DNA of 63,877 nt, filler included, from Reticulomyxa filosa (lineage: Eukaryota; Protista; Foraminifera): the NCBI GenBank assembly GCA_000512085.1. It is 20 parts of 20 records of this genome, joined end to end, with 100 filler letters (N's around TTAATTAATTAA, not from the genome) between each part and the next. Parts side by side here need not be neighbours in the genome. Positions count along the whole stretch, not along the records: positions 43,637 to 49,874 come from ASPP01028433.1; 19 more parts are not named here. One strand, 5' to 3'. The translations under genes were made by a program, and so were the position numbers. Shown piece after piece: positions 43,516 to 50,069 of this stretch (its first letter is position 1; the number at the start of each line of letters is the position of its first letter). The notes under the pieces were generated by a model that worked only from the letters and a program-made list of their open reading frames with translations, ran no database searches and was not told the DNA's origin.

Positions 43516-44041
43516 TGAAGACTTTTTTTTTTTTTTNNNNNNNNNNNNNNNNNNNNNNNNNNNNNNNNNNNNNNNNNNNNTTAATTAATTAANNNNNNNN
43601 NNNNNNNNNNNNNNNNNNNNNNNNNNNNNNNNNNNNGAGACATAAAAAAAAAAATGTAAAACGATTGCACAGACAAATGTGTGAGTCTCGGACTATGGTT
43701 GCAGGATGGAAATTAACCAAAAACACAAGAGGTCACTCACTCACAATCAATTCTGCATATAACAATATCAACTTACGCACATGCACTGTTTTTTTTTTTG
43801 AAAAGAAAAAACTCTTTAAAAAAAAAACAAAAACTACGTGTTTGAGGGAAAGATGTATACAAAATAATAAAAAACAAACAAACTAGTGACTAATGAATTA
43901 ATTCATAGTGCAGCTTCCTTTTCTATAGAAACACAAAGTGAAATATTTATTAAAGTTTTGAGTGAAAACATATTAGTTTAATTTTTTTCTTTTTTGGAAA
44001 GGGTAAAGGGTTATAATATGTATACGTGACTGACATTATTA

Positions 44042-47000
44042 ATGATTGGCAAACACAAAAACCGAACAGCTTTTGGGAGGAATGCAAAGTGTTACGGAAC
44101 AAGGAAAGCACACAATGGAGATGAAAGTCTTAATGCGATTATGTGGTGATGTGATTGAAGAAGAAGAGTTGAAGAAGCAACTCGAAGAAAACAACGGCAA
44201 CGTATCTGTGGTACTTGAAAAGTTGGTTTCAAAATTAATGAACCAAAAAGTTAGGTTATATTTTACTAAAAACAACAAAAAAAAAAGTGTCCAAAAATTT
44301 CTTAATAAAAAAAAAAAGACTGAAATTCAAGTGAAAACGTGCATAGCAAGACACAAGAGCCAGAAAATAAAAATGAACAAGTTTTCATTCTCATAAATTC
44401 TATTTTACTTTCTTTTCTGTTAAAGTAATTATTTGTATTATCTTTTATTAAAAAAAAAAAAAAAAAAAGGATAAAAGACAATCAAGAGTTAAAAAAAGAT
44501 GGAGAAAGCGAACAAAAATTAGACAAATTGCACAAAGAAGATGAAAAAGTAGAGATTGGGGAAACGAAGCCTGGGATAAATGTGCAAGGTTATTGCGTGA
44601 ATCAAGATTGTTTGGCAGCAAGGGCAAAGCTTCCAGTGTGGGTGAATCTTGGATTTGGTGATGCTTCCTTTCATTCCGATAGGACAAATTATCGCTGCCC
44701 AGATTGCGCACAAGCAACAGTTACATCCGTGGTAAAGGCTCTGTTTTTCAATTCAGAGCACTCTATTTGTGCGAGTGATACGTCGATTCCTGTCAAGGAT
44801 AATCATTATCAATGCTTTTATATAATCAAACCGGGACTATCATATGATCTGAAATCGAAAAAAATTAGACAACATGCAACAAGTTTGGAAGATTTAATAA
44901 TGAAGAGTGAAGATGCAATGACGAGTAATGAGATATTAAACTTAGTGGCAGAATTACAGAAGTATTTGATAACAGTGGTAAAACCATCCAAAGTGAAAGA
45001 CAAAGTAAGATTATTGGAGAAGATTCAATGTGATTACAATGGCGATTACAATCAAGTATTTGATGTTGGGAGATTCACAATTTTATGTGATAATGCAACT
45101 AAATTGCAAACAGCAGTGGCGGTGATGAAGAAGGCTGAGCAATTTAACTTGATTGTATCTGAAGATAAAGACTTCTTTGAAAGGCAGTCTAAAACACATC
45201 ATCGTTTCCATAATATTAAACTGTATGTCCCTAAACATGATGTATATGTGGAAATGCAAGCAACATTGAAAAATTTCACAACACTGGAAGGATATACTGT
45301 AATTGAAAATCCAAAATTAAGCCATTTATTTTATGAGCACATTAGAGCATGGAAACCAAACAACTCAGAAGAAGAAGATCTGAAACAAGCAAGTGATGAT
45401 ACTTTAACAAAGATTAATGATATTATTTGTGAATGGATGGATGAAAAAGGAATACAAAAAATGGCAAATCGGTACAAATCGAATTCGGATATCGGAGTAT
45501 TGAAACCACCACAACTCTCTAAAAAAACAGAGATTGAAATTAATAACAATGTGTCATTGAAAATGATACAATTCGTATATGAACAGTTGTGCAAATTCAC
45601 TCCAGAAAAAGTAAAAGGGAAAGCCATTTACATGGTTCTATATGAATATTATAAAAAGTATATAGTTGGAGATAAGAATCCAGCAAGTTGCGCGGATTTT
45701 GCACTATTATTGCAAGAGGCAAGGAAACAAGAAATGGAAGAAGATATTGCCATATCTCAGGCACTCGAAACATATATCCCATTACAAGCAAATAATTATC
45801 CGCATATGGATAACGATGACAATAAAAATCAAGATACTTATGATTGTCATCAACATGTGATTACCTTTTTGGAAAAAGAAAAAGAAAAAGAGGAAGAAAA
45901 CAAAAATGAACAACAACAGCAAAGAAAAGCAATGATCATTCAAGGAAAATCAGGATCAGGAAAAAGTATATTTTGTCGTCATTTGGAAAATACATTATGG
46001 AATAATTACATATCTAATTCAAATAATCGCATCCCTGTTTATATTTCTTTTTCAAAAGTATATGATGACCAAAATGAAAAAGATATTATTTTGCAAGCAT
46101 TACAGGGTAAACATATTAGCAAAGAAATTATGGATGCGATACGTGAAAAAGTGTCCTTTGTATTTATTATGGATGGATTTGATGAAATATTTGACTTTTA
46201 TCGTAAAAATGAAAATGAGCAATATTTCTATGATCGCTTCAATTTGAGTCAATGGAATGCAAAAGTGATTGTTACTTGTCGAAGTAAAGTATTGAATGAC
46301 GATGATATCAAAAGTACTTTAATTGGCACAAACAAAAATGACACATCAATGATGTACTTATGGCCATTTACAAAACAGCAAATGTCGAATTACATTGAAA
46401 AATTTGCAACAATGAAATCCAAAAGTAGCAATAAAATGAATAATGAAGACAATGATTGGACACCGAAGCAATATGAGGAAACATTAAATAACTACTCAAA
46501 TTTACAGAAAATGGTGGAAGAACCATTTCTTCTTCAACTTATTTTAAGTGTATTACCGTCATTGGTAAAACGATATGGAATAGGGAGCAGAATTACAAAA
46601 GCACAAGTATATGAAGTATTCAATGAGCAATGGATTGATATTCATACACAGAATATAACCTCGAAATTAGCAGAATTACGAATGAAAATGGACACAAGCA
46701 AAGTCAAAGCGACATTAAAGCAGTATTGTCTTGATTTAGGATTCGCCATGTTTATTCAAGGAAATCAGGTTGCAATTGAATCTGATTTTCACTATGAAGA
46801 CAATCATGAAACTTGGAGTAAATTAGATCCAATCATAGAAAATGAAAACACAAGTATTGTGGATAAAAAAACGGAAATGAAAACAGCAAACGAAGGTGAA
46901 TCTTCAAAAACAAAAGATGCTTGGGAAAGATATTTCAGCGGTGATAGTGTGGCGAAATATGTATTAAGAAGAGTGGGTGGAAATAAATATCAATTTTTAC

Positions 47001-49500
47001 ACAAATCATGTCAAGAATTTTATGCAGCTCAAAAAATTATATTGGACATTATTTCATGGAAACCAATTATTTCCGGTGACAGTGTTAACAATCAACAATT
47101 TCAAAAGCAATTTAAAACGCATGCCCAAAGCTCTTTTTCAATCGTAAATTATTGAATGAAGAAATGGGAATTATTCAATTTATTGCAGAACGAATTTATG
47201 ACAGCAATCCGATATTTGTAAATTTAAAAGCTCGATTATTCCGAATTATTGAAGCATCCAAAGTAAATCCAACAGTATCAATTGCAGCTGCAAATGCTGC
47301 GACTATACTGAATGCAGCCCGCGTTAGCATGAACTATCAAAACTGGGATAATGTCAAAATACCACATGCCATCCTAGATCGTGCTTTCCTGGAAGGTACC
47401 AGTTTCAAGGAAGCCATCTTAGACAATGTCAGTTTATTCCAGGCTTTTCTTAACAATACCAATTTCACTGGTGCTTCTTTGAATCAAGCTCACTTTGGTG
47501 AATATGCTTACTTCAAGGGACATTCAGGTTGGGTCACTTCAGCGCAATTCTCTCCGGATGGCTCCAAAATTATATCAAGTTCGCATGACAGGACAATTCA
47601 ATTTTGGGACGTGTCATCAGGAAAAGTACTTCAAACATTGAAAGGACATACCAATATAATTAATTGTGTACAATTTTCACCTGATGGCTCCAAAGTTGTG
47701 TCATGTTCAATGGATAACACGATTCGAATTTGGGATTTATCATCCAAAGAACAGCTCCAATTATTGCAAGGACACACAGACAATGTTACATTTGCACGAT
47801 TTTCGCCTGATGGATCCAGAATTGTATCGTGCTCATATGACACTACCATTCGATTGTGGGATGTGTCATCCGGAAAACAATTGAGCATATTGCAAGGACA
47901 TACTGGTTATATTAGCTGTGTACAATTTTCACCTGATGGATCTAAAATTGTATCGAGTGCATTTGATCTGACTATTCGATTGTGGGATGCAATCTCTGGA
48001 AAATTTCTTAGTTTTTTGAAAGGACATACATGCACGATTTCTTATGTGCAATTTTCACATGATGGATCACAAATAGCAGCAGGTTTAAATGATATGACAA
48101 TTCGATTGTGGGACGTGGCATCTGAAAAATGTCTTCAAGTATTCGGAGGACATACCGGTTATGTTACTTGCGTGCAATTCTCGCGTGATGGATCGAAACT
48201 TATATCAAGTGCAAGCGATAACACCATTCGATTGTGGAATACGTCATCTGGGAAAATCCTTCAATTATTTGAAGGACATACGAGTATTGTTGCCTCAGTT
48301 CAATTTTCCTTGGAGGAATCCAAAATTTTGTCAAGCTCAGCAGATTACACAATTCGATTGTGGGATATATTATCCGGACAGCAACTTCAGCCATCAGAAG
48401 GGCATTTCCATATGGTCATTTCGGCGCAATTCTCATCTGACAACTCACGAATTGCATCCTGTTCACATGACAGGACTATTCGACTATGGGATACGTCAAC
48501 TGGAAAGCAGCTCCAAGTATTTGAAGAACATCCCAGTACAGTCTCTTCTGTACACTTTTCACCTGACGGATCTAAAATTGTTTCTGGTGGATGGGATAAG
48601 AGTGTTCGGTTATGGGATGCGTTAATTGGAAAACAACTTCAGTTATTGGAAGGACATACAAATATGGTTACTTCTGTTCAATTTTCACCTGATGGATACA
48701 AAATCGTGTCTGGCTCATATGATAACACGATCCGATTGTGGGACATATCATCTGGAAAACAAATTCAATCATTGGAAGGACACACGGGATATGTCACTTC
48801 TGTGCAATTTTCACCTGATGGATCCAAAATTCTGTCTGGGTCATATGATAAGACAATTCGAGTCTGGGATGCATCATCTGGAAAACAACTTCAATCATTG
48901 GAAGGGCATACAAGTATACTTACAGCTGCGCAATTTTCACCTGATGGCTCCAGAATTGGGTCAAGTGCGTATGATTTAACAATTCGAATATGGGATGTGT
49001 CATCTGGAAAACAACTCCAATTAATAAAAGGGCATACTACTGTTATCGCTTCTGTGCACTTTTCTCCGGATGGATCCAAAGTTGTATCAAGTTCCTGGGA
49101 TCGCACTGCTCGGGTATGGGATGTGTTATCTGGCAAACAGATCCAATTGTTGGAAGGACATACATCTTATGTCAACTCTGCGCAATTTTCATCTGATGGG
49201 TCCAAAATTGTGTCAGCCTCGCATGATAAGACCATCCGCTTATGGAGCATGACTCCCCACCGAAGTGCAGAGTTGTCTGTCCATCCAAAGAACGTAAGTA
49301 CAATTAATCCTTCTGCTGGGCCATCTGGTTTAGAAAATGCAAATAGTCATCTAAAGAATAGGGAAGGGGAGTGGAAGTGCGTTTGGATAGGCGGTGTTCA
49401 GGATTGCGGGTTGTCCTTGAAAGGTAGTATTTGGAAGAACACCAAAGGTTTAACGTCATCGCAAGTGTTACTTGTGGAACAGCGTGGTGGTACTTTTTAA
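44042..49500 (+). CDS. NLR-like STAND protein: CUE-like, Zn-ribbon, RelA/SpoT-like nucleotidyltransferase, NACHT NTPase, pentapeptide repeats, 14 WD40 repeats
   Basis: RelA/SpoT-like block 44980-45352. Walker A GKSGSGKS (~45944-45967), Walker B FVFIMDGFDE (~46157-46186), VIVTCRS, PFLL and YQFLHKSCQEFYAA. Pentapeptides ~47368-47499, WD40 47515-49248. ORFs 44528-47155 and 47152-49500 join if one base is added near 47128 (HAQKLFFNRKLLNEEMG). Two short 5' introns; the start codon is uncertain. Confidence 0.9.
47515..49248 (+). repeat. 14 tandem 126-bp coding repeats (WD40, 42 aa each)
   Basis: Repeated GH....V..VQFSPDGSKIVS.S.D.TIRLWD.SSGK.LQ.L with high nucleotide similarity (caattttcacctgatggatc...). 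Confidence 0.95.
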
Positions 49501-50069
49501 ACCATTATTTTTATTTCTTGTTGATTTGTACAGACAAAAGTTGGACTTTTTAGTGACTCGAATCTCATTTTTCATTCAGTAAATCTTGAAAGACTTCTTG
49601 GGGCTCAAATATTTCCCATTAAGTAAGTCTTCAATCATGAGTATCCAGTTTCGCATACAATACAGCGCCATAGTTTATGGTATGGGCTGACATGTAAGTG
49701 GATTGCGACCCCACCTGACGCCTTTATTTATTTATGAAAAAATAGTACGAAAAAACATTTGCGATAAAATTTTAATTTGAGATCATTTCTAAAACACTAA
49801 TAATTGTATGTAAAGGACAACAGAACAGACAAATATTTGACTGTTGTCATGGATTTTGACATCATTCGAAAAGCNNNNNNNNNNNNNNNNNNNNNNNNNN
49901 NNNNNNNNNNNNNNNNNNTTAATTAATTAANNNNNNNNNNNNNNNNNNNNNNNNNNNNNNNNNNNNNNNNNNNNATACATACATACATACATACATACAT
50001 GCATATATGTATATATATATATATATATATTGGATACTCTTCTCCCAGGAAAATACAACAAATAAACTG

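Follow-up and report, generated by a model that had tools for sequence, protein, structure and literature searches.

Organization of the RFI_32216 locus

The window analyzed here is a 63,877-nucleotide stretch of joined genomic records from Reticulomyxa filosa, in which positions 43637-49874 are an entire contig (6,238 nt, GC 0.35). The contig contains two long plus-strand reading frames, open reading frame (ORF) 1 at 44528-47155 (875 codons) and ORF2 at 47152-49500 (782 codons), which differ in frame, and all features described below lie on the same strand. A search with the NACHT half of ORF1 identified the public gene model RFI_32216 (P0068, 994 aa) at 100% identity. The order of encoded domains is a possible CUE-like domain, a beta module with four cysteines (4-Cys), a RelA/SpoT-homolog (RSH) synthetase domain, a NACHT NTPase, a pentapeptide linker and fourteen WD40 repeats. 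ORF1, ORF2 and P0068 were each searched separately, and the frames and exons were never joined into one protein. We consider it likely that the RFI_32216 gene and the WD40 frame downstream of it constitute a single member of a family of ~50 receptors that resemble nucleotide-binding oligomerization domain-like receptors (NLRs), belong to the signal transduction ATPases with numerous domains (STAND), and carry a toxin-type RSH effector. An earlier interpretation made without database searches (hereafter the sequence-only reading) had proposed an RSH-NACHT-WD40 receptor in a rhizarian protist, and the organism is correctly described as such.

The RSH domain and its relatives

The RSH domain (44879-45442; ORF1 residues ~118-305) is assigned as a toxSYNTH-like synthetase of the Tas1/polymorphic-toxin branch from Pfam, phmmer, profile, AlphaFold (AF2), Foldseek, VIA-align and conservation data. 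Pfam PF04607 matches the RFI_32216 copy with E 0.005 and 17.5 bits (curated cut-off 27 bits), and paralogs P0096 (30.2 bits) and P0105 (27.9 bits) exceed the cut-off; a single-sequence search of NCBIfam returned nothing relevant. Tas1 is the best Protein Data Bank (PDB) match by single-sequence phmmer (E 0.26), by a profile made from paralogs only (A2; E 2e-4), and by a profile made from a 25-sequence alignment (A1; E 1e-15). The A1 profile also finds RelP/YwaC (5e-8), RelQ/YjbM (3.5e-4) and Rel/RelA (~1e-2) in the PDB, with no sequence-level match to CapRel at E<=1. A phmmer search with residues 100-330 against 1.84 billion representative sequences gave 66 matches, ~48 of which are R. filosa paralogs or environmental relatives. 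The other matches include bacterial eCIS_core or phage-MuF proteins, some of them very long, and architectures of these kinds are typical of polymorphic toxins. Several of the 66 are proteins of 300-630 aa that hold RelA_SpoT matches, all under the Pfam cut-off.

The AF2 model of the domain, built on the A1 alignment, has a predicted local distance difference test score (pLDDT) of 80.3, and a Foldseek search of the PDB with it gave nothing but RSH synthetases among the 50 best matches, headed by Tas1. VIA-align superimposes the model on Tas1 with a Z-score of 13.8 (172 residues, root-mean-square deviation 2.9), followed by RelQ (Z 13.3), RelP (Z 12.8), an exported Streptomyces small alarmone synthetase (SAS; Z 11.9), CapRel (Z 11.2) and the long Rel/RelA/SpoT enzymes (Z ~9); other nucleotidyltransferases (Cid1, TUT7, Pol mu) score 8.5 or less. 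The model thus predicts a RelA/SpoT synthetase fold that is nearer to RSH enzymes than to other nucleotidyltransferases. At the sequence level the domain appears closest to Tas1, a toxin that makes (p)ppApp, and to the RSH ends of bacterial eCIS/MuF-type polymorphic toxins. The spacing D-x-[AG]-R is common to the R. filosa domains, their bacterial relatives and Tas1 (DLAR); housekeeping SAS have D-I-A-G-x-R.

The motifs expected of an RSH synthetase are present in order. KVKDKVRLLEK (44990-45022) contains the putative donor-ATP basic motif K155-x-K157-x3-R161-x3-K165 (ORF1 numbering), FDVGR (45059-45073) the predicted Mg2+-binding aspartate D179 with R182, THHRFH (45194-45211) the G-loop residues H225-R226, VEMQ (45248-45259) the pair E242-x-Q244, and SHLFYEHIR (45320-45346) residues H266 and Y269; EDKDFF is located at 45161-45178. 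We aligned the RFI_32216 copy with 74 further domains, and in these 75 sequences (domain numbering, with ORF1 numbers in parentheses) K58 (157) and D80 (179) are kept in all 75, R83 (182), R127 (226) and E143 (242) in 74, Q145 (244) and Y170 (269) in 73, K66 (165) and H167 (266) in 72, K115 (214) in 70 and R62 (161) in 68. The catalytic set is therefore 91-100% conserved, with the exception of the first lysine, K155, which is found in 37 of the 75. The aromatic position of the G-loop is His in 59 domains, including the RFI_32216 copy, and Tyr in 14.

The pattern K-x-K-x3-R-x3-K ... D-x-G-R ... [HY]-R ... E-x-Q matches the set of residues in FaRel2, where the donor triphosphate is contacted by R64, K66, S70 and K74, Mg2+ by D90, and adenine by R95 and Q147; E145 is located beside Q147, and Y128 is the G-loop residue (PMC11782079). 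Roles of the R. filosa residues are assigned by analogy with FaRel2, and on this pattern the enzyme looks active and looks to belong with the toxin-type branch.

These results bear out much of the sequence-only reading, which had recognized an RSH-type pyrophosphokinase from the order of its motifs. Every motif that it quoted is located where it had been placed, both acidic catalytic residues (D in FDVGR and E in VEMQ) are present and are conserved across the paralogs (75 and 74 of 75), and the resemblance to RSH enzymes is beyond chance by profile E-value, by the fifty Foldseek matches and by the Z-score to Tas1. The structural comparison that it had called for gives an RSH synthetase fold and not a fold outside the nucleotidyltransferases.

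The NACHT domain, WD40 array and frame change

The NACHT domain (45932-46405; PF05729, E 1e-10, 42.2 bits against a cut-off of 26.7) has intact Walker A (GKSGSGKS, 45944-45967) and Walker B (FIMDGFDE, 46163-46186) motifs. A helical or low-complexity linker without a Pfam match (45443-45931) joins it to the RSH domain; this linker is conserved among paralogs and is part of a cassette that is repeated in P0001. Behind the NACHT domain is a helical region of the STAND module (46406-47127) that aligns with P0003, P0004 and P0005 up to 47128 and continues to the end of the first frame. The RSH and NACHT domains of RFI_32216 are encoded together with the Cys module in one uninterrupted exon. Likewise, a single exon of P0005 encodes its initial 596 residues, which comprise the Cys module, the RSH domain and the sequence that follows it. 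To judge from the single frame that is open from 44429 to 47155, the RSH domain is predicted to be on the same mRNA as the NACHT domain, as the sequence-only reading had supposed.

In the second frame, a pentapeptide-like repeat linker (47368-47496; AILDRAFLEGTSFKEAILDNVSLFQAFLNNTNFTGASLNQAHF) is situated before the propellers. The corresponding region of P0004 (aa 984-1009) has a sub-threshold match to PF00805 (Pentapeptide; E 1.8e-5), no single stretch of which passes. The linker is followed by fourteen WD40 repeats of exactly 42 aa each (47518-49281; Pfam WD40 E 8.7e-165 in 14 stretches), in which Tandem Repeats Finder (TRF) detects a period of 126 nt with 13.6 copies and 67% matches. Fourteen repeats suffice for two seven-bladed propellers, the presumed sensor. 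The units have a mean pairwise identity of 56% (range 38-81%), and their variable positions cluster after GHT and around S-x-D-x-T, which are positions that form the top surface of a propeller. The C-terminal tail (49282-49500; 72 aa and the stop codon) has no assigned family and ends EGEWKCVWIGGVQDCGLSLKGSIWKNTKGLTSSQVLLVEQRGGTF. The NACHT domain and the fourteen WD40 units reported earlier are thus both intact downstream of the RSH domain, in a eukaryote.

Contrary to the earlier claim, the three parts do not form a single ORF: the effector and NACHT domain share a frame and the WD40 array is in another, although the same layout is uninterrupted in P0005 and ~40 other paralogs. The discrepancy is a one-base frame change at ~47128-47140, in or beside a T-run at 47134-47138, where this copy is 1 nt shorter than the P0005 locus (L001); the ORF1 stop codon follows at 47153-47155. 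The tblastn matches to P0004 and P0005 change from frame 1 to frame 3 at 47128, and blastn against L001 places a 1-nt gap at the same site. Since the 782 codons behind it stay open, the frame change must be an error in sequencing the homopolymer or else a lesion of very recent date.

If the frame change is real, RFI_32216 would be a pseudogene in which the WD40 sensor is uncoupled from the RSH-NACHT part, and only the paralogs would be functional. This fits the different frames of ORF1 and ORF2, the straight reading through of P0004 and P0005, the gap in the DNA alignment and the termination of the publicly annotated protein at this position, and large NLR families usually include pseudogenes. 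However, a run of five T is a typical place for read-length errors, the open codons behind it have 37-43% GC and encode all 14 of 14 WD40 units intact, and there is no further stop codon or frame change in ~5 kb; with so long an open frame and every unit preserved, any lesion would have to be very recent. We take the loss of this copy as a serious possibility, albeit one that we do not favor over an intact gene.

The 5′ end and N-terminal modules

The ORF1 frame is open from 44429, and its first in-frame ATG is only at 44900, behind the 4-Cys module that every paralog keeps; coding sequence must therefore come in from upstream. The start at 44528 given in the sequence-only reading is an artifact, a TTG codon chosen by the bacterial code (table 11), and the real start is predicted in an upstream exon. 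In the public model P0068 begins with MQSVTEQ at ATG 44082, and exon 1 (44082-44380) encodes a small helical domain that may be of the CUE/UBA type, with a Lys-rich segment behind it. An A/T-rich GT...AG intron of 89 nt is predicted at 44381-44469 from comparison of P0068 (KMNK joined to IKDNQ) with the DNA, and exon 2 begins at 44470. An alternative donor, GTTAGG at 44250, is located right behind the part conserved in paralogs (which ends at ~44249), and either this or the public donor at 44381 may be used. An LLGGMQ motif (44067-44084) that is kept in paralogs starts directly behind a CAG, ahead of the ATG with which the public model opens, and this model may lack one further 5′ exon.

Segments of paralogs P0002 (aa31-109) and P0007 (aa55-122) match 44052-44297, and the small helical domain itself (44082-44249; LCGDVIEEEELKKQLEENNGNVSVVLEKL) is common to P0002, P0007 and P0045. 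The Pfam CUE match is weak (E 0.064 in exon 1 and 0.0047 in P0045), and P0045 is named 'CUE domain-containing' in UniRef. The receptor may thus have a ubiquitin-binding domain at its N-terminus.

The second module (44558-44824) is an unnamed all-beta domain of ~90 residues that is always immediately N-terminal to the RSH domain in R. filosa paralogs. It contains four invariant cysteines (C-x4-C ... C-x2-C) that form a putative Zn site, and an alignment of 12 paralogs (A3) has the invariant residues G29, N31, C36, C41, L42, W51, N53, C70, C73 and E90. Its AF2 model has a pLDDT of 86.5. Against the PDB the module has no Foldseek match below E 1, and the VIA-align matches, which are beta sandwiches of cupin- and crystallin-like type, have Z<=4.2; we assign it to no fold family. 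Template-modeling (TM) scores of 0.58-0.63 over 87-97 residues were obtained in the ESM Atlas with unnamed parts of rotifer ADP-ribosyltransferase proteins and of ubiquitin or ubiquitin-RING proteins of sponges and Mucoromycota, and a language-model search likewise leads to unnamed rotifer clusters. We treat these matches as leads only.

Proposed mechanism and alternatives

By analogy with STAND receptors, the two WD40 propellers would keep the protein closed and then bind a trigger, upon which the NACHT domain would exchange nucleotide and oligomerize. The clustered RSH domains would move pyrophosphate from ATP to an adenine acceptor. The preferred acceptor is ATP or ADP, which would give (pp)pApp and drain ATP by analogy with Tas1 and FaRel; alternatively, tRNA could be pyrophosphorylated at its 3′ CCA end, the reaction of CapRel and FaRel2, and translation would be stopped. 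The sole ground for ranking (pp)pApp synthesis over tRNA modification is that no relative is nearer than Tas1. Cytoplasm would then be arrested or die locally, in an amoeba that is syncytial and fuses with itself, and this would serve innate immunity or allorecognition. Since R. filosa forms an anastomosing network with many nuclei, anti-pathogen and allorecognition roles are both plausible. There is no second gene within the 6.2-kb piece, and autoinhibition by the NACHT-WD40 part is assumed in place of an immunity or antitoxin partner. We infer an oligomerization-activated pyrophosphokinase in immunity or allorecognition, with the RSH domain as an ATP-consuming effector of death or arrest, by analogy with these characterized enzymes and receptors.

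Four points weigh against this proposal. The RSH domain of RFI_32216 itself scores under the Pfam cut-off. The acceptor substrate cannot be read from the sequence, in which the G-loop aromatic residue is His. The immune or allorecognition role is suggested by architecture and family expansion only. Repeats of the highly similar type seen in HNWD proteins were not found in the WD40 array (56% amino acid identity, 67% TRF matches), where variable positions cluster but concerted evolution is not evident; at this identity, unlike that of HET-E-type repeats, the analogy with allorecognition is loose.

A different product, (p)ppGpp, would make the RSH domain either a source of an internal signal of the protist or a means to manipulate bacterial prey or symbionts. 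R. filosa is bacterivorous, and the fold and motifs are common to RelQ and RelP (Z 12-13). Synthesis of ppGpp to manipulate bacteria was proposed in 2014 by Dyrka et al. for the fungal RelA_SpoT NLRs (PMC4986451). Nevertheless, profile searches place the sequence much nearer to Tas1 than to either RelP or RelQ, and toxin-type proteins with eCIS or MuF domains are among its nearest relatives. It is also not evident how an NLR effector in the cytosol would reach bacteria, and nothing points to a known ppGpp receptor of eukaryotes. We therefore think (p)ppGpp an unlikely product and retain (pp)pApp, or pyrophosphorylated tRNA, as the expected one.

Still less probable is a catalytically dead domain that serves only in nucleotide binding or as an adaptor or oligomerization module. 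The low Pfam score of the RFI_32216 copy and the change from Tyr to His in the G-loop would be in keeping with such a role, but every class of catalytic residue is kept in 72-75 of the 75 domains even though the paralogs are only 38-86% identical overall, and this is the pattern expected of an active enzyme.

The family in R. filosa and related sequences

A search with the P0005 RSH domain, limited to proteins of 954-3,034 aa, identified 54 proteins, all from R. filosa, of which ~40 are of 1.3-2.0 thousand residues and are annotated with NACHT and WD40. The paralog count that the sequence-only reading had proposed thus gives a family of at least 54 R. filosa proteins with the RSH domain. Uninterrupted paralogs include P0005 (1,734 aa) and P0109-P0140, and two R. 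filosa paralogs already hold both PF04607 and PF05729 in precomputed public annotation. The cassette of Cys module, RSH domain and linker is arranged in tandem in some paralogs, as in P0001 and in P0096, which reaches 659 bits where the self-hit has 504. In P0012 the cassette is at aa 590-923, with no NACHT domain detected by Pfam.

Bacterial contamination, for example by a cyanobacterial or actinobacterial NACHT-WD40 gene, is the most improbable of the alternatives: combinations of Pentapeptide, WD40 and NACHT and toxin-type RSH domains are common in bacteria, and the main exon is long and without introns, but the close homologs (all 45 and all 54) are R. filosa entries on separate low-GC contigs, GC is 0.33-0.35, the Cys module without an in-frame ATG requires an upstream exon, and L001 spans 5,641 nt for 1,734 aa, hence contains introns, and adjoins a POPDC gene.

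Related domains are found in environmental sequences. P0018 (L003, an ENA metagenome contig of GC 0.48) is 49% identical to the RSH domain of RFI_32216, and P0018 and P0037 (prefix AAFX01), on contigs of higher GC, have 39-49% identity to R. filosa RSH domains. The family is probably present in other, unsampled relatives. Another architecture, RelA_SpoT-Ank-TPR, is encoded by P0061 (L002:508-3222; ENA metagenome ERZ26858995, GC 0.51), the RSH domain of which carries the same RFT[IV]xC and YVEMQ motifs. A reading frame for Ank-NACHT begins 58 nt downstream of P0061 and is cut off by the contig end, and to judge from this locus the R. filosa RSH subtype meets NACHT in at least one other organism.

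Comparison with known systems

RSH enzymes are regarded as proteins of bacteria and plastids, and those of the toxin branch (Tas1, FaRel, CapRel) as weapons in bacterial conflict; to our knowledge, no study has shown how a RelA_SpoT NLR domain acts in the cytosol of a eukaryote. The family in R. filosa has many members and is well conserved, and its placement in the toxin branch leads to the concrete prediction that ATP is consumed in making (pp)pApp or that tRNA-CCA is pyrophosphorylated, which is testable on a 200-residue domain. It also extends the architecture to a third eukaryotic supergroup, and bears on how often NLRs recruit bacterial toxin domains. Tentatively, and with rather less confidence than we have in the architecture, we propose that ~50 foraminiferan NLR-like receptors use a Tas1-type (pp)pApp synthetase or tRNA pyrophosphokinase effector that was acquired from polymorphic toxins of bacteria in an event separate from the origin of the fungal RelA_SpoT NLRs. 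They would constitute the first eukaryotic immune or allorecognition system to kill or arrest its own cytoplasm by alarmone-type pyrophosphorylation, with the 4-Cys and possibly CUE-like modules tying it to ubiquitin signaling.

The sequence-only reading had stated that no characterized eukaryotic NLR has this effector. We likewise found none that is biochemically characterized, but the novelty was overstated and the R. filosa architecture is not unprecedented. RelA_SpoT is one of 12 N-terminal classes of fungal NLRs listed by Dyrka et al. in 2014, with explicit RelA_SpoT-NACHT-WD40 examples in Gaeumannomyces (PMC4986451), and in 2025 it was still a canonical fungal NLR effector, with 17 genes in Sordariales of which 82% have T-NACHT (PMC12258605). 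The literature search found no paper linking Reticulomyxa with NACHT or alarmones, nor toxSAS with NACHT. The RelA_SpoT-NACHT-WD40 layout was thus already known, and the new elements are the rhizarian lineage, the family size, the extra modules at the N-terminus and the placement in the Tas1/polymorphic-toxin branch.

The fungal RelA_SpoT-NACHT-WD40 (or ANK) NLRs are similar in that a RelA_SpoT effector at the N-terminus is followed by NACHT and, at the C-terminus, by as many as 14 WD40 repeats, enough for two propellers, and both groups are eukaryotic, cytosolic, expanded into families and never biochemically characterized. They differ in lineage, Fungi as opposed to Rhizaria/Foraminifera, and in the extra CUE-like and 4-Cys modules before the RSH domain and the pentapeptide linker before the WD40 repeats in R. 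filosa. The RSH class is rare in fungi (<1% of annotations; 17 genes in Sordariales), in contrast to at least 54 R. filosa proteins. The exhaustive phmmer search found no protein identified as fungal at E<=1e-3, with bacterial toxin-type and some unnamed metagenome proteins found instead, and the fungal and R. filosa RSH domains are therefore probably not close kin, which hints at independent capture.

Bacterial NACHT/Avs proteins and the fungal HET-E/HET-D (HNWD) proteins share the layout of effector, NACHT and repeats and a presumed activation by oligomerization. They have effectors of their own, namely nucleases, proteases, HET/TIR-like domains and others, and the WD40 repeats of HNWD proteins are near-identical with hypervariable spots, whereas those of R. 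filosa are on average 56% identical.

CapRel and FaRel2 are toxSAS enzymes, tRNA 3′-CCA pyrophosphokinases that act as fused or bipartite toxin-antitoxin systems in phage defense. They have the toxSYNTH fold in common with the R. filosa domain (Z 11.2 for CapRel) and follow a similar logic, in which an RSH effector held inactive in one polypeptide is released by a sensor upon meeting a foreign protein; the sensor, however, is a pseudo-zinc-finger antitoxin domain (pseudo-ZFD) and not NACHT with WD40.

Tas1, the (p)ppApp synthetase toxin of the Pseudomonas aeruginosa type VI secretion system (T6SS; PDB 6OX6), is the best match in both sequence (E 1e-15) and structure (Z 13.8). In common with the R. 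filosa domain it has D-x-A/G-R spacing, a K..EK..DY.GD motif and an H..Y..R tail, and it too is a monomeric toxin-type RSH enzyme fused to other modules. The two are only 18-19% identical, and Tas1 is secreted as a toxin between bacteria and has an immunity protein; the R. filosa enzyme, by contrast, is predicted to be part of an intracellular STAND receptor.

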